NCBI GenBank assembly: GCA_964188305.1
Contig: OZ076889.1
Source of the DNA: Podarcis bocagei
Lineage: Eukaryota
Length of the DNA: 64,000 nt
Strand: one strand, 5' to 3'
Shown here: piece by piece, positions 1,996 to 26,817 of the stretch
How the letters are laid out: each line of letters starts with the position of its first letter
How positions within the stretch are numbered: the stretch's first letter is position 1
The notes under the pieces: model-generated
The model's input: the letters and a program-made list of their open reading frames with translations, nothing else
What the model was told of the DNA's origin: nothing
Databases searched by the model: none
Made by a program: the position numbers and the translations under genes

Positions 1996-3815
1996 AGGGC
2001 TGGGCAATATATCAATACATCATCCAAAACCAGTTTCAAGTTCATATCATATTTTTGACCTTGCAATATATTGTGAATCATGATTTGTGTGTACTACAGA
2101 AAAATCACAATGTGGGGAAAACCTTGGAGCCAGCCATTGCCTCTACATAGCTCCATCCTTATTTCAGACATTGTGATTTATCAGTATATCACAAAGTTTA
2201 GCTGGTGATATAGCATGTTGTTGAAAACCAGATGTCGCCTAACCCTAATTCGCATAGATAATCTGGTGAAATCTGTGCCTTGGGTCATCAACATCATGGA
2301 AAGTGTAGAGCAAGATATACTATGGCTGCCTTTGCATGTTACTGTAAACCATAAGCTGTGGCACACCATAAAGGAATAAATTTCACTCAATTTCCCTCCT
2401 CCCCATTAATGTTGGAATGAATCAAGCCACAATCCTTGGCTTAGCATTAAGTCGAAAATGGGTCTTGCTTTGTTTCATTCCCCGCAAACCACTGTTGGTA
2501 AGCCAAGAGCAAACCTGGGCCACAGATCATTGTTAACCACAGTTCTTAGTTCCAGTATAATGCTAAGCCAGGGACCAGGGGTTGTTTCCTCACAATGCTA
2601 GCGGCATTGGATAAATTGGATACATTGCATGCACAGTAAGTCATAGTTTGTGGCTTATTATTATGGGCAAACACAGCTAATATCTTACTGAACGGACAGT
2701 TGCTTAGATGTTCACTTTAAACAGCCTAACCTACTGAATGTACTCTTTGATGCAGCATCTTCCACCCCACCCTGCTCCCTCCATCTCATGAAAGAGTTAG
2801 ACCCCAAAAAGGCCAGGGGGAGGGGAAAGGGCTCTTTCAATGAAAGTTATGCTTAAGAATTCCATGGCACTTTGCATCTTCATACTATAATGCAGTTATT
2901 GATTAACTGATGCAAACAACTGTTTAACTTCTTGGAAACTTGAATGTGGTTTGCAGATAACGGTTCGGGAAATGTAGCATCCAGTCACATGACATTTCAG
3001 TTTCTACTTCATAGCTGCTTCCCTGAAGTTTGGAGATTTGGTGGTAAAAAATACATTTCTCACTCCTTGTTACAAATGACCAGGTTTCCTTTTGTGGTAG
3101 CATGTGCACCTCTGTAAAGTTTCCAAGTGGTAAATAAAATCATTTGCAGCCACCTAAAGAGCTTGTTGTGGTCATGTTTTAAGTTGTGCCGGGGAAAGAT
3201 TTGATAACACTACATACAGCACGGAGTTAACTTTTCACCTGATTTGCAGCCTAATATAAACTTCCACTTGGCCACGCTGGAGCCAACAGCGCCAAAGTTT
3301 TCAGCAATGTGTGTAAGATTTCAGGAGCACTGTATAGTTTTACCTCCATTTAATAGATGGCGGATTTAGAAGGGCAATCTGTGCAGGAAACTTGCTTCTG
3401 GACCCAAATGGCTCTTGCCCCATCAGAGGGTCATGAGAGGAAGGCAAAGGAAGGCACAGCTCTTCTGTATTAAGAAGTCTTTTAGCAAGATCCGATGCAT
3501 GCTTACTAGGAAGTAAGTCCCATATTCACCAAAGCTTACTCCCAAGGAAACATGCCTAGGATTGCAGCCTTCGATATACACGGGCTAAGTGGCCTATGAG
3601 GTTCACACACTTCAGTAAGGATGCTACATTTTTATGGTGCCCTTCCTGTGATGTCCTCAAGATGGAGCACATGGTCCCCTCTCCCCACATCCTCACAACA
3701 ATCTTGTGAGGTAGGTGAGGCTGAGAGTGGCTGGCATAAGGTCATCTAGTGAACTTCATGGTTGAGCTGAGATTTCAACTGGGGTTTCCTCAGGTCAGTG
3801 CTGTATCTACTGTGC

Positions 3816-7909: not shown

Positions 7910-10348
7910 GTAGGTCTCCCAGACTCTACTTCTCCCTCCCCAAAAAGTGAGAGGCTGGCTCAGTTTTCTGATATGAAGAGTTCTCAGATGTTGCTCTGTT
8001 AGGTTCCCTCATAAGAAGAGGGAGAAGATTGAGACAAATTTTGGGCTTGTTGCTTTAATGTAGTTTGCTTTGATTTTATTGATGTTGTTTTGGTTTTAAT
8101 TGAGATTGTTTTTTTTAAAAAAAATCTATTTAGTTAAATAAAAACATATACATCAATAACCTACAACAATAAAGAAATAAAGGACAACAGTATAACTGAA
8201 CAAAAATTAAACATACACAAGACGTATAGAGAGAGATTTGGGTCATTGCATTCACATTCTCTGGAAAAAGAATAATGATAATGATGGCAACAATTGGTGT
8301 TGGAGGACAGCAACTTTAAAAACGTACTTGTTTCATTTATAAATATCAGGCTATTGTCCTCCGGGTCTTACGATGTTCGTGCAGCTGAAAAGTTACTAAG
8401 AATTGCAAATAGTAGCATATTTCACAAAAGTCATTACAGAAAAGTGGGTGATTAAAACAGGGGAGTAAGTGTGGACTCGATATGTAACTGCAGTTTTTAG
8501 GAAGGGACTTTGTACCCATTTTTGGTCCTTATTAAGGAAAAAATGCTGCCACTACAAGGATTCCATCTTGACTGTCATTTTCTGACCCACACAGCTTTAA
8601 TTGCATGTTCACAGCAATTGTGTGATCAAGGTAGGAGGTTTTGCAGAAACTCTGCTCAAAGTAGTGAGCCAAACACCTGGACCCTCCCCATGCCATGTTG
8701 CAAAGTGAAGGGATCAACCCATTCCCTCTTGCCAAGTTCTTTCTAAACCAGCAGGCAGGTAGGGAAATTACCATAGGTGGTCTGGCAACAAGCAGCTTTG
8801 TTGCAGCCTAGAGCTTGTCCATGGTGGTCAGTTGCCAAAAGAAGGATTTGGGTCAGAGGTCTCCCTCATAATTCTCTTTCTGCTCCCTGACCCACAGCGC
8901 ATACATGCCTATAGACGGGTGCACCCATACTCGTTCCCTGTGAATGTTGTTTAACTGTCTCTTGTGTCCTCTCTTCCTGCTCTCCCCTCCTTGGGAAGCC
9001 AAGCAGCGTTGCTCTCACCCCTTTGCCACCTTGAGGTGGTCAGTGTACTGCAACCAGGTAAATTAACCTACAGTGCTTTCTCTTCCCTCTCTTTCAGTGA
9101 TGATGTGTGTGTGAACTCTCTCCATTCCATACTATGCCTGCTGAGATTTTTACAATGGCACACAAATCTTCAAGGTTATGCAACCTAATGAGACATGCTT
9201 CCATGTTTAAGTCTCATTTTGTCTTATAATTCTGGTTTTTTTAAAAAAAAAACCACAACAACCATCACAAAAATAATGATAATCCTGTTGTGATTTTTTT
9301 ATTATTCTGCCAGTCAGCCAAAGGGGTTCTCTGAGCAGCTAACAATCAAGTTGAAATGCATGTAAAATTCAGTTAAATATTAGCCAAGTTGACTGGCAAA
9401 CGTCTCTGAGCATCCTGCAAAAAGAGGTGGCATAGTTCTATAGATGGTGCCACCTCAGAAAAGGCCCTACTTCTTCCCCCTAAAGACTGTGGTACCTAGA
9501 GCAGAGCTATCCAGAAGATTTAAGTGCCAGAGCAGGCATCATATGGGATGTGTCTTGCTGTTTATGTGGATAGCAATTCTCAGCTTTCACAAGTCTTATT
9601 TTTCCCCTTTTCTTCTTGGATGCCAAAGGCATCCAAGTGTGCGCTGCTTTGCTTCTAGAGTGAACACTGTTTTCCTTCAACCATGTTGCTGGCCCTTGAA
9701 CACAGGGTCAGATTTATTTGCTGGGTTGTTCAACTGTAGATTATGGACATCTCCAGTGTAAATGGTGCCATGGGTTGCAACTGAGGATAGGATTTGCCAC
9801 AACCCATCACTTTTTGTGCTTTTCATTGCCACAGACCAGTGCTTGTACTTCGCAGTATGAACATAATGTGGTGTTGCAGCTGTACAAACAGAAGAAAATT
9901 TGTTTTCTGTTTAGATGAAATTACGTGACTGAGCCTTAACCCTGTTCCAATATGACTTTTGGAAGCAGATCTCCTTATATTCTTATTTTTATAATATTTA
10001 TTACTTACCCTTTGCCAGCAGGTCCCAAGGCAGGTTACAACAATCTAAAATTCGGAATTAAAACAGCTAAGGCAGTACAGGCTTGGCCTGTGCATTCAAG
10101 CAGAATTTAGGGGAGAGAGGTACCATTTGAAGCCACAGGTGGGGAGTACTATATTTGCGTGTTTGTGCTTTTAAGTGTAAATTTATTACAAAGTTGTTTC
10201 TTCATTTTTATTTGTATGAATATTAGTATATTTGTATGAATATTATATATATTTAAAAAGTCATCATCACCTGCAGTCTGAAATGACAGTCCATTCTGCC
10301 GTCTTGGGATGCTTCTACCTCTTTTTATTGCATGTTATAGAAGGAGCA

Positions 10349-12061: not shown

Positions 12062-12169
12062 GCGGCAGCACTGGACTTAAGCAACGTTTACTGGAAGTAC
12101 GTGGTGACAGTGGCCGCCGTGATTTTGCTGGGCCACTTTGTGGTGCGGCGCTTCTTCAACAACCAGTGA
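12062..12169 (+). CDS. BAK1: BAK1 last coding exon (AAALDLSNVYWKYVVTVAAVILLGHFVVRRFFNNQ*)
   Basis: Polypyrimidine acceptor ...cctctag. Encodes the C-terminal TM anchor followed by VVRRFF. TGA at 12167-12169. Not in the ORF track. Confidence 0.96.
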   Translation, partial: AAALDLSNVYWKYVVTVAAVILLGHFVVRRFFNNQ

Positions 12170-15915: not shown

Positions 15916-17142
15916 TTCCAAATGAACACCGTTTCTGGGGGCTGGTCAGTAGCATTTGACTGTCTCCTACCTAGCAATGAATTTCCTCCCCCCCACACAC
16001 ACACACACATATATTAAAGGCTTTAGCTAATATTCTGTCCAACTCATTTCTTCAAGGGTTTCCATCTTATAGTCTCCATCTGTGCCATAGAATTGGTTGC
16101 CCCTCTAGAGCATAGGAAACACTCCTGGTGACACTTGTGGCAGCTCTGGGTTTATAGCCATGAAATAGGTAGAGGCAATGCTTCTCCAAGTAGACTGCTC
16201 AGCAGTCTAAACTACATGAGCCATTGAGGAAATCTTTGGGGATGACAGTTAAGTTTTTACATACATACTTGAAGCCATAATGTAGCTATGAATCTGCTCC
16301 CTTTGTTCTGTATTGTATTTAAGAAGCTGCTTATTATTTTCCGTGCATCACACCCAGCTTTAACAGCCCCCTTGCCCTCAGGGATTCAAAGGGAATGAAG
16401 CTAATAATCCAGAGGTACCCAGGATATCAGTGCATCCAGCAGAATTGCTTTTCATTATCTTGCCTCCTTACCTGCAAGGCGATCGCTCGAAAAGTGAATC
16501 ACTGCTGGACGTGTGAATCGCTGGAGGAAGAAGAAAGAACGTCTTCCGGGGAAATAAATACAAACAGGGAAAGGGGCTGTCCTCTTCAAATCACATTGCT
16601 TAATGGCAATGTGGTGTGCATGGCAAGGAGTTTGGATAATTCCAGCTCTAAATGCAGATCCTGAATTGAGTGTTTATTGGAGGAAAAGAGTCTACAGCTC
16701 TCCTGCTGTACACACAGACTGCTTTGGGATTTGGAAAGATGCCCCTCTGTTTAATACAAGACAGACATCTAGCAGGGATTGTTGTTCTGGTCTCAAAAGG
16801 CCAAGAAAGACCTTCTATTGGATCTGGGTATATAAGGTTTCTTGCGTGTATCACATCATGCACCAAGCAAAAAACAATTGTGCCTTTCTACCTCCATCAA
16901 GATCTGACCCCTCCATGGGGGCATGGTGGTGCTACTACCTTTGGAGATACAGCGAAGGTGCGTCTTATAACACTCCCCAAATGAGCACTCCAGCATTCGT
17001 TGCGTGGGGTATTCATGGGGAATGCACTGGGTTGTTTTCCTGGAAAGCTATGCCTTCTATGTACTTCTGAATTGTGAAGTGCCTGGCACACTACTGGCAC
17101 TAAGTAAATGTTAAATGGTAGTTTCTGTAATATATATGTCAA

Positions 17143-17148
17143 AATAAA
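17143..17148 (+). terminator. Candidate distal polyadenylation signal (BAK1)
   Basis: AATAAA after an AT-rich stretch, with a GT/T-rich downstream element at about 17230-17260. Confidence 0.45.
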
Positions 17149-18406
17149 AGTTATATGCAAATACAGATGGTTTTAAGTTTATGTTATTTAAGTGTATGAA
17201 CATGAGCTCGAAATACAAGGTGTTTCCTTAATGTGTTTCTGTTTTTGTTTGTTGCTGTGGAGAGCTGTTTAGGAAGTGGCTTTGTTTTGATATTTTACGT
17301 TTTTTTAAAAGTGGATTTATGCTTCCAAAGCTGTGCCATCCCACTTACCGCATGAAGTTGTACAGTTTATAGAAGCCATCTTGGTTTTCCCTATAGCTTA
17401 CAGCTTATGGTTTGTCTGGGAGAGGGTTTGGACAACATTCTAAGTCAAGTATGTCTTCGCTCCGTGTGGCACAGCAGCAAAAGGAGTGCAATCTCTTTTC
17501 CGAGACCCTGCCGTTCACACCAGGTTATGGCTTGGCTTATGCAATGGAAGTGGATTCTGCACTCTGCACAGCTCCTCACTCCCCCCTCCAAAATCAGGCT
17601 CCTTAGAGTATATAAAGTGACAGGAAAGTGCACTGGAATAAGTAAGATAACAATTGTTTGATGTGATATAATATGACCTCTCTGCAAACAAATCAGGATG
17701 AATGCAAAATAAATAGACTGTCAGGAAACAGCCTGGGTATTAAGAACATTACCTGCAGTGTAGGATGAAAGACGGAGGCACGGAGATTCATCTCACCTCC
17801 TGCATTTCCTACGCTGGCAATCTAATAAACACAGACAATAAAAGGAAAGTGGAAGCTAAAAGCAATTAATGAAGACTGGAAAAGGCAACCGTCTTAAATA
17901 GCCATAAAAGCAGCATTGCCTACTTGCTGACAAAATCCCAGGCAAAAAAGGTAGGTTTAGGTTACGATTAATTCTAAGCACATTTGCCTAGGAGTAAGCT
18001 TCATTGAAATTAATAGGACATACTTCTGAGTAGATATGCATAGGATTGCATTTGTAGGAGTTTTGACTGGAAGCTGCCATGGCCATCCTTGTGAACAGTC
18101 AACCCAAATGTGATAAAAACACAAGGGCTGGTCAATTTCAAACTAATATTTGTATGTTTTTGTTGCACACTGGACCAAAAGGTCCTGGCAAGACACTATT
18201 GTTCTGCCTTACCCAACTATTTTTGTGTGCGTGTGGAATCTGCTGCCATTCCAAGGTAGGTAAGTTATTGACACAAATTATATCCCACCTTCCAGTAAAA
18301 TATCCAAAGTGGCTTATAGTCTGGATAAAAATACACAAGCTATAATAAAAACAAGCACAACAATATCAAATAACATCACCGAAATCGGTCACCTGATAAA
18401 AGTCAC

Positions 18407-18520
18407 CTGATTTTCATGCCACAGATGCCAAGTCTGGATGCCAGCTTGTGCCAGTCATTCCCACTAATGCTCTTTGCCTCTAACAGCAGCTGCAGCTGCT
18501 CAAAGAGCTCATGGAGGATT
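18407..18520 (-). pseudogene. UNC5CL: UNC5CL death-domain exon segment, open in frame
   Basis: 114 nt without a stop, ttccag acceptor-like site and CAG|gtgact donor. An in-frame TGA lies about 10 codons upstream of the acceptor-like site. Confidence 0.9.
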
Positions 18521-18964
18521 CTGGAACCCCCCAAAAATGCATCTCCATGTCATTCCAGACATCAACTAGCCATCCAACTGGATGTAAAGACCTTCGTTGC
18601 CTCTCCCTCTGGAGTTGTAGGCATCTGTTGTTCTGCACCCTTGACACTTTTTCCTGCCTGCTCCATCCTCACCAGTAGTTTCCACTTGATTTCACCGCTA
18701 ATCTTCCACAGGAAATCATTTCCCCAAATGCATACGTTTTGACCATTTTCAATCAGGCAATGGAGAAAATTTAGGCATACTCTTTAATGTAAGGATGGGG
18801 AATGTGTGGCCCTCCAGATATTGAGATTCAGCTTACATCAACCCCAGCCAACATGATCAATGGTCAATGGTGATGGAGTATTGTAATCCAGAAATATGGA
18901 GGGGGGCACAAATTCACCACCCTTGCTATAAAATGAAAGGGAAGTAGAGCTTTGTGGAAGGGCC

Positions 18965-19132: not shown

Positions 19133-19237
19133 CAACATGACTTAAGAACTAGGCCCCGAGTTTAAAATTCCCAAATAAGTTTTCCATTTATGCATTTATA
19201 GAATTGTCATTACTGTTAATGCTCCTTATCTTAATAT

Positions 19238-19576
19238 AAGGTAAAGGGTAAAGGGCCCCTGGACAGTTAAGTCCCGTCAAAGGCGACTATAGGGTGTGGT
19301 GTTCATCTCGCTTTCAGGCTGAGGGAGCCAGCATTTGTCCACAGACAGCTTTCCGGCTCATGGCCAGCATGACTGAACCGCTTCTGGTGCAACGGAACAC
19401 CATATCAGAAACCAGAGCTCACAGAAACGCCATTTACCACTTGCACTAGTGTCCTTTGAACTGCTAGGTTGGCAGAAGCTGGGACAGAGCAATGGACAAT
19501 CACCCTGTTGCAGGATTTGAACCGCTGACCTTCTGATCAGCAAGCCCAAGAGGCTCAGTGGTTTAGACCGCAGCGC
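19238..19576 (-). mobile_element. Sauria SINE (older copy) inside the UNC5CL remnant
   Basis: AAGGTAAAGG tail, and body similar to the copies at 1681 and 10349. Confidence 0.85.
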
Positions 19577-20645
19577 AATACTGTATTTTAATATACCACC
19601 TGCCTTATCCGGAATGGCTGAGGATAGCTAGATGGCGTGGTCATATCTCACTGACCATATAAAGCAGGTTGTCGCTTTTCCGATTCTATGAAGGAAGAAC
19701 TGAGGCTGAATGAAAGAGGTCCAAACACGGCAGTCCAGGGCAGAGCTGGAATCTGAACAGAGAGACATATAGGAGCATGTGAAACTGACTGCTGGCCTAC
19801 TGGTTTCTGTAGGCCCACTAGGTCTCACATCATGTTGCTTCTGAGGGGTCAAAGGTAACAAAATGCATCCAAACAGAAAATTGTACATTCATTTAACCCC
19901 ATATCTAGTCATCGTGGTTACCAGGTGCTGGCCAAACAGTCCTGGCACTGTTACCTCCCTTATTCTGATGCATTTGTTGTTTTAGCTGGCTTTGCCTTGA
20001 ATCACCTGTGCCCCCCCCCATTCTGCTCCAGAGGGTCGCCCAGCCCTGTGGAGCAGGTTTTGTGCAGTTTTGGTGGGGTGAGGAAGTGCTGCTGCATGCG
20101 CAGGAGTCTGCTCACATCACATTGGATATTGCCCTTGACTATCTCTCCCTTCTAAGTGTTCCTGGCACCCTGGTATGCCAATGAGATGCAACTGCAGCCA
20201 AGCAGTGCCAGAGGAACAGCTGTCACTCGTGTCCCGGCCTTTTCATCGCATGAAAGCCCTTTCATTCTGTCTACAGACTTTATTTTATTTATTTATTCCC
20301 CTCCTTTCAAAACAATTCCAGTACAGAAGCAGACTAGGAAAGAGCTCAACTTATAAGGCTTGTTAAAAGAGGAACGTCTTTCGCAGGTGCTGGCAAGGGA
20401 GCAGAGATGGTACCTGTCTAACATTCAAGGGAAGGGAATGCCAAAGGGTAGATGCTACAACACCAAAGGCCTGATTCCTACACTGGGTGGAATGGACCTC
20501 CTGATAAGGTGGAGTCTGCAAGAGGCTCTCACAAGCATCCCAGAAAAATGGGACAATAATGGTTATTTCAACAATTCTAACGCTGTGGATACCAAGGATG
20601 CCTGCATCACTTGAGAAACCAGGTTAATCCACAGAGAAACAAGAG

Positions 20646-20695
20646 TGCACTGGTAACCCCCAGGTCCAACTTGCACTGGTAACCCCCAGGTCCAA
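20646..20695. repeat. Tandem duplication of a 24-nt unit
   Basis: TGCACTGGTAACCCCCAGGTCCAA occurs twice, separated by 2 nt. Confidence 0.9.
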
Positions 20696-23600
20696 TTCTA
20701 CTGAGTGTGCATTACATTGGCAGGTGGGGAGCAATGTGCTACTGTAACTTAAGCGGGATCATAGTCTATTCTTAACCTTCCTGTCTCATAGCAGGTTCAG
20801 CAGAGACCCATAAAAAGATACACACCAAGAATGCTACCAGCTGCACTTGCTCCTGCAGGATTCTCTCTCCCTCTTTGTTTAGTAGAAGGTTAAACATAAC
20901 AAAAGATAAATGGCCCTCATAAAAAGGGCAGCTGCTGTCTAACAATCCCCCTCCCACAAAAAGAGAGAGCCTTATAATGGTAGTTAACCAAACTTCTCAA
21001 TTGTAGTTATTAACTCCACAACAGCCAAGGTTAAGACCTAATTAAATTTTCACCGAAGGTAGCATTGGAGTGAAGGAATGTACTGTAAGTCCTGAAGCAG
21101 ACTTCACTGCTGCCTAATAGCTCCATAATGGGCCTAACACCAAATTAACCTAAGCCTCCTTCACCTAATCCCACAGGACATTTTTTTTAAAGCAGCTGTC
21201 CTGGGGGAGAAAGAGGCCCAAGGGGAAGGCATGTACCGTAATTGACTCTCATAGCCATGAGATATTTTGTAATGTTCTATTGGCTGCTTTGAGATTTTAA
21301 AAAAATAGAAATTGGTACCGAAATGACCAATACATTCATAACCAAAACAAAAATAAAACAGGATGGGGGCAGCCAGTGAGCTCAGGACAGAAAAAATGTG
21401 CCTCAGACTTTTCTAATCCTATATGCCCCAGTGTCTCTGCATCAATGTGTCTGAGGGTATTTCTACACAGTGGCAGCCTCTGGTCTTAGTGTATATATGT
21501 TTTTGCCCTAAGATGACATAGTAACTAAGGGAGACCCTGCTTCCCCATCCAAAGTAGTCACATCCTGGGAAGCGGAATTACCTGCCTCAACCAGCCTGTT
21601 TCCTGGTCTCAGCACCCCTATGTCATCTTTTTGTTTCCCCTTCCTCATCTGCCCCAGCCTGCCCACCCCACTCTTCAGCATAGTGACGCTTTGGGACTCA
21701 TGACACCTGCACTGGAGGAATTGGGAAGGTGTGGTCCTCCCAATGTTGTTGCACTCCTTCTTCCATTGTCCCTGACCACTGTCGATGCTGGCTTGAAGGG
21801 AGATGGAGTTCAACAATGTCTGGAGGGCCACAGGGTCTCCATCCTTGTTGTATATTCAAGGAAGGGGACACAGTGCTCTGGGTGCATGTGATTTTGCACA
21901 AGTAAGTTTACTGCTGTTTTTAATACATGCCCAGCATCATACTTAAATCAGCTCTAAGCAGTTACCCCTGAGATACGGATATATTTTATGACAGGCTGAA
22001 AGTCCAACTCCTGCTGTGCTTGCTACATGACCCATGGCACAAGGAGATCATTTTGTTCTGGAGGTCTTTGAAACCTTTGTCTTGCAAAGCCAAACTCAGA
22101 TCCTGGAAATGTGTGCCCCACACTTTAGAATTGGAGATCAGCACAACTTGTACTATTGTAGATGCAGCTTGTTCCCTTTGGGTCTGGTCCAGTTTGCATA
22201 ATGAGAATCAGATTTCTCTAATGTCCTGGGGACCAGGTTGCCATTATATATCCAAATAACACCAATGATGCACATATGTAGCAAACACTTATCTGACAAC
22301 CGAGAAGGGAGCTAACAAAAGGGAGTGCATCCTTCCTTCATCACAACATTCTCCTATGGCCTTAGTAAATAAACTGGGTTTCTCATTAACTTCACAGTTT
22401 GCTCTTTCCAGTTTGCATTTAATACAGTAGCAACTGCTTCCCTAGATACCCAGGTGCACACTGTCTTAACAGTCAGGCAGAAAGAAGCATTAAGATTACA
22501 GCCCTACAGTGTGATTTCCATTACCAAAGCAATTCTACTATGAAAGTGTCTGCTGTGGACACTGCAATCTTGGCTCTGGAGTAAATTTGCGCGACTGGAG
22601 CATTGGGATCTGGTTGAGTCTGGTCTAGCCAAGCAGATAACTTCAGGTGGGTTCACAGAAGAATGTGCAAATACCAGGTCTCCCTGTTATTATTATTATT
22701 ATTTTCATATTCATATTCATTATTATTATTTTCATATTTCATACTTGGGAGAACCATCTATACCAAACAATGGATCACATGTGCTCCTTCGTACGACATG
22801 AGAATAGCCATAACAAGTGCAGATTCCCACCAACACACTTGGGACACTGCACCTTGCAAGGAGAATCAGGACTGAACCAGCAATGTTGTCCTAAATTCCT
22901 TCTGTGTTGGTTCTATATGCCTTTTCTTTTCCCCCTCCCTGATCTCTTAGAGTAAATACATTCAATAAAAACACATGTAATTAATGTCTGGGTCAATAGC
23001 TGGTCTAAGAAGTACTTGGGGCTCCAGATTTCTCCTAGGCCAACACCGCAGACAAATTTTGGATGTAGCAGAACTGTTATTTGTCATCCAATCTTCACAT
23101 CAGTTCTTCCTTGCTTATTGTCAAACAAGGAAGAATATTAAGTACTCCGTTGCAAAGATCTCAAGAGCCTTTGCTCTTCTGTCTCAAGAAGTTGAAAACA
23201 CAAGTGAGCTATTCCCAAAGGCCCTATGAAGAAAATTGCTTTGGGATAAATAGTCCATAGTCAGTGACTATCTATGCTGAAGAACATAAAGTATCTCTGC
23301 TCCCTGTGTTGTTGAAGCAAATGCTCATTCACATCTAATTCCAGCTTCCCATACCTAAAACACTCAGCAGAACGGCTCACTATCTCTTACAGCAGGTGGC
23401 AATAATGACAGCAAGAAGATAAGACTAAAGGAGGAGGCTTGCTGAAGGTGTCCTGCCCAAAGCTGATCTCACAGACTGTAGTAATACTTCTTAGTTATAG
23501 TTTGCTTGCTCAAGCTCTTTGCTGCAACAGGCATTGTACTGACATCCAGATGCCCATTCTTGGATTAATGCATTTCATTTGCTACTTTGAAGGGACAGCT

Positions 23601-24799: not shown

Positions 24800-25540
24800 T
24801 GCACCAGCTCGTCAGCCTGGCCTGGCTCCGCAAGCCGTTCAGCCCAACTCTGACGGGTGACTGGCCTCGGAGAAGGGTCGCTGCTGTACCCCGCCCTCTG
24901 CAGCCTGTTACACAAACGGTGCGCCGCCGGGGAGAGAGCGAGAGCGATCTCCTCCTCTCTCCTTATCGTATTTGCACGCTGCAGTCCCTGTTGTGTAACC
25001 CGACCCACACAGGCTCTTCGCAAAGGCGACGCCTCGCCCCGGCTCTCTCCCTCCCGCTTCTTGGGCACAGCGAGAGCTCGAGAGAGGCTGAAGCCCATTG
25101 GCTCGCTCCTCGCGTCCGCCCTGGCAAGACGGTGAAGTTCCGCTCCGGGAAGGTAAGGGAAACAAAAGGCGGCGCGTGGGGGGCGCCCGAGCCGCGCAAC
25201 TTTGCCAGGGTGGTCGCGTTCTGTTGCAAAGCGGGACGTTCCATCCGCTCGGACAACGGAATGCCTCTCAAAGAAGCAACACGGGCGCAATGGCTCCCCA
25301 CCCCCAGCACACACACAGCATGCAGCCAATTAAGCCACGCTGGGCTGCGTCGAGGCGGAAGGTCAAGCCAAGCCACCTCTCCGTCTTTCTAGAAACGTTA
25401 ACAGCAAAGACCCCTGTGTCACCCTGAAGCGTGACCAACCGAACGGCCCTTGGATTGTGGCGGGAGAGCTTTCCTGCGCGACTCTAGTCCGCGAAAGCTT
25501 GTATCATATGCCGTCTGTGCAAAGCGTTTTCGCAGGCTGC
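24800..25540. promoter_or_regulatory. CpG island; probable TSPO2 promoter with non-coding exon 1 (donor at 25152/25153)
   Basis: Dense CpG against a CpG-depleted background. Inverted CCAAT near 25097. Consensus donor AAG|gtaagg at 25152. Confidence 0.75.
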
Positions 25541-26817
25541 AGCAGCAGGGCTCTCTTGCTGTTGCTGGGTTTTTTAAAAAAAATATTACTGTAATTCTAG
25601 AAATGTACAATGATCCTCCCTACAGTGTTACCTATTCTCCTCATCTGTTCATCATAGTGTAACAAATTGAGACTATGAATACGTATTAGAACTTCAGAAT
25701 GGGAATCAAGATTCCTGTTGTCTGTGGAGCTGGAAGTAATTTTTTTACAAAACAAAACTGAAAACAGGAAATACTTCAGTCAAAAAACATCTTGCATATG
25801 GGGAATTCCCAATGGAATTAAATGAAGCGATCAAAAATAACTTGTTTATTCCACCTATCTTTAACAGAGCATTCAGGCTGCAGGGCGTGTGAAATAATTT
25901 TTTCCTGATCTCCAATAAAGGCAAACAGTATCAGAATTTTCTGTTTGATAAGAAATCTGATCCTCAGCAAACTCTAGTTTAACACCAGGCTCTCAATGGG
26001 ACTAAAAAGTCTTTAGCTATAATCCTATAACTACTTGAAATGAATGGGACATACTTCAGGGGGTGGGGAAGCACACTAAATCTGTTTTCTGATCATTATC
26101 CCTGACTGCTTACTAGAGAATCTGCTGTCTGGTACACAGTTGTTAAGTGTAATTATGTAGGTAAGGGTTTGCCAAATGAAAAAATAAAGCATGAGAATTG
26201 CTTTGCCTTAAATAAAGCTTGAGTGGCTGTCTGGCAAGGATGCTGTAGTCACAATCTGCACTGCACATCCTGCATTGAACAGTGAGTTGAGACTTGATGG
26301 CCTCTAAGGTCCCTTCCAATTCTATGATCAAGGCCTATCTACTACAGCATCTTGTCCCCTACAGCAGATGATGAGCATCCCCTATTCTTTGTCTCCAACA
26401 TCCCATAAGCAAGACATATATGCTAGTTCTGAACATGAAGCTTCTAATGGGTGATAAGTGGCCTACCTGAAGAACAGCAGCAGACTGCTAAGGGGAGATA
26501 AATTTGCCAAATTAGATTGCCATGGTCTTAACAGCATTCTTGATACAGTAAAATGGCTTACTTTAACTTTAAAATGCTAATAACAGCATCCTCGAAGGAA
26601 AGATCACTGGAAAAGGAGCATCTGCATCTGTCCCTCATTTTAACCAACACAAGAAAAAAGATCTTTGCTTTATTTCCTTTAACCTACAGAAGGAAACACA
26701 TCTCAAGTTGAGAGTAAGTACCTCCCAATGTGAAAATAACTAATGGTGTACAATTACCAATTTTCAGTTTCAAAGGCACAGGCGCAATCCGTATTTGCTA
26801 GAACTGTCTGGCTGAGG

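Follow-up and report, generated by a model that had tools for sequence, protein, structure and literature searches.

A solitary, complete first death-domain exon of UNC5CL near BAK1 in the lizard Podarcis bocagei: a likely relic of late gene loss

The 64,000-nucleotide stretch of Podarcis bocagei DNA analysed here (the window) carries one recognisable exon of UNC5CL. The minus-strand segment 18407–18520 represents the first death-domain exon of the gene, native and complete, 114 nt in length and symmetric in phase (2-2). The coding capacity of UNC5CL is destroyed within the 64-kb window, and the gene is dead here. With a probability of roughly 55%, the exon is a neutral relic of a late and independent loss of UNC5CL, i.e. 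a unitary pseudogene exon in its ancestral place. UNC5CL (UNC5C-like, ZUD) is a death-domain adaptor gene and encodes a ZU5-UPA-death domain protein of vertebrates; the death domain is a six-helix fold. The exon and its borders consist of the following features.

18401..18406, minus strand: native donor GTGACT; similarity to the skink ends directly past the donor (alignments)
18407..18520, minus strand: UNC5CL first death-domain exon (translation, Pfam, protein, exon and profile searches, cross-species alignment)
18521..18567, minus strand: end of the upstream intron, with the acceptor ttccag and a polypyrimidine tract broken by GGGGGG (alignments)

On the minus strand the segment reads ttccag/A ... 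ATCAG/gtgact, where the slashes mark the exon borders and 1 + 111 + 2 = 114 nt lie between them. Positions 18407–18519 translate into 37 stop-free codons, as a preliminary description of this DNA had stated. The peptide aligns with the N-terminal helices of the Pfam Death domain (PF00531), including the conserved W and the LA..LG motif, with an E-value = 4.2e-4 and a score of 20.8 bits, just under the curated cut-off of 22.6. The match covers profile positions 2–33 of 86, and with 32 of the 86 positions the six-helix fold could not be formed by this segment alone. Over the 37 residues, 25–26 are identical to placental UNC5CL sequences (non-human proxies for the human comparison) and 27 to the bichir protein, and 29 of 34 aligned residues are identical to alligator. 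The earlier estimate of about 25 of 37 identical residues was right.

Searching 1.84 billion representative proteins for matches to the 48-residue open frame gives 11 hits, and all of the named ones are annotated as 'UNC5C-like protein' (bichir, sawshark, sea turtles, and Pangshura). An annotated squamate protein with this exon is not found among the hits of this exhaustive search. A word search with the same open frame shows no match, and a PDB sequence search yields no relevant match. The antisense 108-codon open reading frame displays no homologue. A pattern scan of metagenomes gave a match in one GC-rich bacterial contig, which is a chance 24-mer match.

The locus was compared with those of four other sauropsids. 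The alligator sequence (contig L001; the full locus is L005) has exons 100% identical to Alligator mississippiensis UNC5CL. The skink sequence is contig L002, obtained from SRR31508491, HiFi reads of Prasinohaema aff. flavipes (PMC12400806). The turtle loci are from Natator depressus (L003) and Pangshura tecta (L004). The tree used for parsimony was ((lizard, skink), (alligator, (Natator, Pangshura))).

In all five aligned species the exon measures 114 nt and is free of indels, and its borders are as in alligator. The alignment bears out both the retained native donor and the symmetric phase 2-2 exon that had been proposed. The ttccag site is present as well, but it is not merely acceptor-like, as it had been called: it aligns with the cttccag of the living alligator gene and the tttcag of the skink relic, and is the native acceptor. 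Approximately 40–45 nt of the upstream intron are conserved with the skink, and a CTGAGTRATGCTG-like motif in this region is common to the window, alligator, and the turtles. A retrocopy origin is ruled out by the native intron flanks and splice sites at the orthologous locus.

The surroundings of the exon show several further features.

16661..17200, plus strand: 3′ end of a plus-strand transcript (AATAAA at 17143, RNA reads at 16789–17182, conservation with the skink)
19153..19743, no strand assigned: very high-copy interspersed repeat, SINE-like (contig depth 1e6, tRNA-like loose ends)
20871..20951, no strand assigned: non-coding element in a former UNC5CL intron (collinear; 78% with alligator, 82–84% with the two turtles)
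24800..25600, no strand assigned: CpG island flanked by the minus-strand UNC5CL relic and plus-strand TSPO2 (sequence composition)

The relic is situated between convergent BAK1 and TSPO2/APOBEC2, the same arrangement as in alligator. The BAK1 stop codon is at 12167–12169, 6.2 kb from the exon, which agrees with the approximately 6 kb given in the preliminary description. TSPO2 exons are found on the plus strand at 26.8–30.65 kb and an APOBEC2 exon at 49.4–50.0 kb. Downstream of alligator UNC5CL, at about equal distance, lies a convergent gene of the Bcl-2 family that is taken to be BAK1; its exons can be aligned to the window. The window and alligator are collinear over the BAK1 exons, the intronic element, and the UNC5CL exon. 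The CpG island is probably the former promoter region shared by UNC5CL and TSPO2.

Searches for the rest of UNC5CL all return to the same 114 nt. With bichir, sawshark, and turtle UNC5CL proteins, tblastn against the 64-kb window finds this exon only, and the same result is obtained with single alligator exon translations (E-value = 4e-19). A UNC5CL profile HMM, built from 32 named proteins (32 species) and run against all 3301 open segments, gives the exon an E-value = 2e-18; the next best segment (E-value = 0.75) is at an unrelated place off the locus. Unnamed mammal-like open reading frames, which might stem from human samples, do not contribute to this profile. No trace of ZU5, UPA, or the remaining death domain is found anywhere in the window. 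Thus the flanking sequence that was once coding, described earlier as barely recognisable, is unrecognisable entirely, although the accompanying statement that the death-domain exon is far better kept than the remaining gene holds. Compared with the ZU5-UPA-death domain gene of other vertebrates, the window carries the orthologous first death-domain exon but neither ZU5, UPA, nor the second half of the death domain, and this is a one-exon relic and not a gene. The last coding exon has an expected site as follows.

17201..17803, minus strand: expected site of the last coding exon, with the rest of the death domain (603 nt compared with 1019 nt in the skink; exon trace absent)

A high-copy repeat at 17577–17773 forms part of these 603 nt. 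By one count the region where the last exon is expected is about 600 nt shorter in the window than in the skink; measured between the conserved islands the lengths are 603 and 1019 nt. On the other side, the SINE-like repeat at 19153–19743 is inserted at roughly the expected place of the preceding UNC5CL exon. The contig depth of this repeat reaches 5e6 in the congeners, its loose-end consensus is tRNA-like, and it takes nearly all of the RNA reads mapped to the window. ARAGORN finds no intact tRNA in it, and a comparison of the window with itself is uninformative on repeats within 64 kb.

The skink locus shows a different state of decay. The last UNC5CL exon is still recognisable there (L002 positions 1573–1758), but with a 9-nt deletion and an in-frame stop, and the skink gene is certainly dead. 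The skink last exon documents the loss of UNC5CL independently, in a second squamate family. Since the skink relic has drifted more and yet keeps two exons, point decay alone would have left the ZU5 and UPA exons, which are long and well conserved, detectable in the window, which points to physical removal. We infer that the other exons were lost by deletion, together with repeat turnover, and not by point changes. An assembly error as the source of the missing exons is ruled out: the window contains no N, and its sequence runs collinear with contigs from three other species. The collinearity of these three congeners extends over 16–21.9 kb, thus the eroded locus is real and common to the clade.

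The relic resembles unitary pseudogenes in its orthologous position, its native introns and splice sites, and the decay of the gene in other sauropsids. It differs in that unitary pseudogenes usually consist of many exons with stops or frameshifts, whereas here one clean exon is present and all others are absent.

Changes in the exon were polarised with alligator and the two turtles. All counts are small, as there are 114 sites.

This lizard branch: 7 changes (+1 ambiguous), 2 synonymous and 5 non-synonymous; pN/pS 0.64
Skink branch: 18 changes (+1 ambiguous), 5 synonymous and 12 non-synonymous; pN/pS 0.64
Alligator branch (living gene): 8 changes, 6 synonymous and 2 non-synonymous; pN/pS 0.08
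Turtle branches: 5 and 10 changes, 1 and 2 synonymous, 4 and 8 non-synonymous; pN/pS about 1.0

The lizard exon has accumulated 2.4–2.7 times fewer changes than its skink orthologue since their common ancestor. Maximum-likelihood branch lengths are 0.074 for the lizard, 0.202 for the skink, and 0.106 for alligator. The 7 versus 18 changes depart from equal rates with a binomial P of 0.02 (one-sided) or 0.04 (two-sided). The lizard pN/pS of 0.64 comes from 7 changes, a tiny count, and is far from the 0.08 of alligator, in which the gene is alive; the dead turtle copies give about 1.0. These values indicate that most of the replacements on the lizard branch date from a relaxed phase.

Identity between lizard and skink is 0.77–0.80 over the exon and approximately 45 nt of upstream intron, and falls to 0.35–0.5, the level of unrelated sequence, directly past the donor. 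This island has the shape of a spliced exon together with the signals for its splicing. Identity in the exon is 77% between the two species and the flanks cannot be aligned; therefore the neutral distance between lizard and skink must clearly exceed the sum of 0.28 obtained for the exon, and both copies were constrained for part of the time. The two turtles show another pattern, with 86.8% identity in the exon compared with 87.5% over 2.5 kb of flanks (Fisher P = 0.77). The turtle exon drifts like its flanks, which argues that an old, shared non-coding constraint is absent. An old pan-sauropsid exonic enhancer is ruled out by this control.

A two-phase model, in which alligator-like coding constraint is followed by neutrality and neutral branch lengths are assumed, fits the counts without present selection. 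The neutral phase is about 0.05 substitutions per site in this lizard (CI 0.003–0.13) and about 0.14 in the skink. Under the reading of a late loss, UNC5CL would still have been working and spliced when the lineages of this lizard and the skink split, a condition that would produce a sharp conserved island of exon and splicing signals. The gene would then have died independently in each lineage, later in that of this lizard than in that of the skink, and the other exons would have been removed here by deletions and repeat turnover. Since its death the exon would have drifted by roughly 0.05 substitutions per site, too little for a stop or a frameshift to be seen yet. The later death would also leave a better-kept exon in this lizard without any present function. 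We infer both the timing of the loss in this lineage and the absence of a present function of the exon.

Several observations do not sit easily with a late death. Congeners that differ by 3.5–4.3% share the eroded locus and its relic state, so that at least two deletions would have to be squeezed into a short interval. There are 2 synonymous changes, compared with 4.4–6.6 (rounded to 4–7) expected if the exon had been coding for most of a branch of 0.2–0.3 (P = 0.19–0.04). Squamate UNC5CL models are absent among 71 relatives of the bichir protein, which include alligator, tuatara (partial), turtles, coelacanth, and mammals; this fits an old loss better. The skink keeps its last exon after more drift, whereas this lineage has lost all else. 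The short interval for deletions, the few synonymous changes, and the lack of squamate models leave room for constraint at the DNA level in this clade.

Such constraint is a possible but distinctly less probable explanation than a late, neutral death. The exon would have been kept after the death of UNC5CL by selection on its DNA, e.g. as an enhancer acting on BAK1, TSPO2, or APOBEC2, in line with the cis-regulatory role considered in the preliminary description. The excess of skink changes is consistent with this (7–8 compared with 18–19, counting the ambiguous sites), and the lizard count becomes more unusual (P ≤ 0.009) for a branch length of 0.17 substitutions per site or more, a length implied by flanks that cannot be aligned. 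The lizard branch is as slow at synonymous as at non-synonymous sites (pS 0.09, pN 0.06), which DNA-level constraint predicts. Every other UNC5CL exon is gone, and a bona fide conserved non-coding element, that of 20871–20951, persists within this dead gene at a distance of 2.3 kb. However, the boundaries of the island coincide with an exon and its splice signals and not with a free-standing element. The skink copy shows changes spread evenly over codon positions (6/6/6), with helix-breaking replacements, and since the turtle copies evolve like their flanks any regulatory function would have to be young and lineage-specific.

The exon also displays a cluster of four same-strand TGGCA motifs within 45 nt (18409–18453, minus strand), which occurs nowhere else in the 64 kb and in 0 of 300 shuffles, although this is a post hoc pattern that was noticed only after looking. 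Two of the four motifs were made by substitutions of this lineage itself, and two adjacent (tandem) CAGCTG boxes are found further 5′ in the exon. A retained, putative element composed of the four TGGCA half-sites and the two CAGCTG boxes, acting on BAK1 or TSPO2, is a slightly more tentative proposal than DNA-level selection in general.

There are precedents for exons that outlive their host genes (PMC2831330, PMC3206014, PMC3371700). Exonic remnants and 'regulatory coding exons' persist after their host gene is lost (Dong et al., PMC2831330; Eichenlaub and Ettwiller, PMC3206014); the latter are known from teleosts. The present exon is likewise the exon of a lost gene that forms a conserved island in non-coding surroundings. 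But the published cases (PMC2831330, PMC3206014) show conservation in many species after the loss and enhancer activity, whereas the same UNC5CL exon evolves neutrally in turtles and under relaxed constraint in the skink.

An old loss near the base of the squamates is improbable. In this case the exon would have been neutral ever since, preserved by luck or by a lineage much slower than that of the skink. The missing squamate model among the bichir-protein relatives and the equal pN/pS of 0.64 on the lizard and skink branches are in keeping with it, and of all exons in a gene, the best conserved one is likeliest to stay recognisable. However, the probability of 8 or fewer changes is 0.009–0.0001 on a neutral branch of 0.17–0.25, the exon remains 77% identical between two lizards whose flanks cannot be aligned, and a divergence of 3.5–4.3% among congeners does not suggest a slow lineage.

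Present use as an exon was assessed from the splicing signals, the reading frame, and RNA reads. The polypyrimidine tract now reads TTTTTGGGGGGTTCCAG, with a G6 run, and the corresponding tract is pyrimidine-rich in the skink, alligator, and the turtles. The open frame at 18406–18549 contains no ATG before the last five codons, only TTG. A profile search of the window finds no in-frame upstream exon for the 114-nt segment. A single-cell RNA run of the same species shows no reads on either strand and no joints at 18168–18758, which is a weak negative as 12% of the run was read and it is a 3′-biased run of one sample; the same run covers the plus strand at 16789–17182 at a depth of 12–15. The junctions at the exon that the preliminary description had proposed to look for are thus not seen in this run. 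Rfam gives no match at the exon, and two sub-threshold matches elsewhere in the window are chance matches. Run X17 was rejected as evidence for transcription, as all 30 bins are evenly covered by long contigs and the run represents DNA.

Least probable, by a little, is an exon that is still spliced, be it in a non-coding RNA whose CpG-island promoter also serves TSPO2, in a chimeric coding transcript, or in a death-domain micro-protein: AG and GT are kept in both squamates and both lost in turtles, the frame is open and free of indels in lizard and skink, and the CpG island is upstream on the right side, but these points are countered by the lack of reads at 18168–18758 in the single-cell run, the G6 run, the missing ATG, the restriction to Death profile positions 2–33 with the remaining domain absent from the window, the lizard pN/pS of 0.64, and the lack of both an annotated squamate protein among the representative-search hits and an Rfam match. 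The micro-protein, which had been put forward at the outset, is not supported, with one third of the domain, a missing partner exon, no ATG, a pN/pS of 0.64, a degraded polypyrimidine tract, and one RNA run without reads.

Damage to UNC5CL extends to other sauropsids. In both turtles the acceptor AG of the same exon has changed to AA and the donor GT to AT or AC (L003 positions 8951–9077, L004 positions 2999–3118), and UNC5CL seems to be a pseudogene there despite RefSeq models, some of which are marked LOW QUALITY. The tuatara (Sphenodon) UniRef UNC5CL model jumps mid-exon into the last exon and has no UPA or Death Pfam hits. Its sequence carries the R-to-H change of both squamates, and tuatara UNC5CL may likewise be damaged. 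Mammals, crocodilians, and fishes retain UNC5CL; at least two lizard lineages have lost it, and in turtles it is decaying. The lineages probably lost the gene independently and at different times. A literature search found no published report of UNC5CL loss or UNC5CL pseudogenes in reptiles.

Read as a late and neutral loss, the relic illustrates the erasure of a gene in lizards by deletion rather than by point mutation. Continued constraint on the exon, if real, would instead make it a clean amniote example of an exon that persists as a regulatory element after the loss of its gene. The element would then adjoin an apoptosis gene, and the drifting skink and turtle copies would be ready controls.

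The neighbourhood shows some additional conserved sequence. The plus-strand transcript at 16661–17200, which ends near 17165 and whose single-cell RNA reads at 16789–17182 match the window exactly, is probably the end of a long (5-kb) BAK1 3′ UTR, 1.2 kb from the UNC5CL exon. Segments 16257–16289, 16661–17200, and 17120–17151 are conserved with the skink, and short cores also with alligator and the turtles. The intronic element at 20871–20951 is approximately 65–80 nt in length, with lizard-specific changes at 3 of 63 core columns, and is a candidate deep sauropsid regulatory element. Positions 19744–19940 and 20532–21122, the latter including the intronic element, are not covered by the contigs of one congener (run X13), which represents either a deletion or a gap at about 1x coverage. 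Behind position 18396, 11 nt past the donor, all three congeners carry one extra C, the only difference near the exon among those listed.
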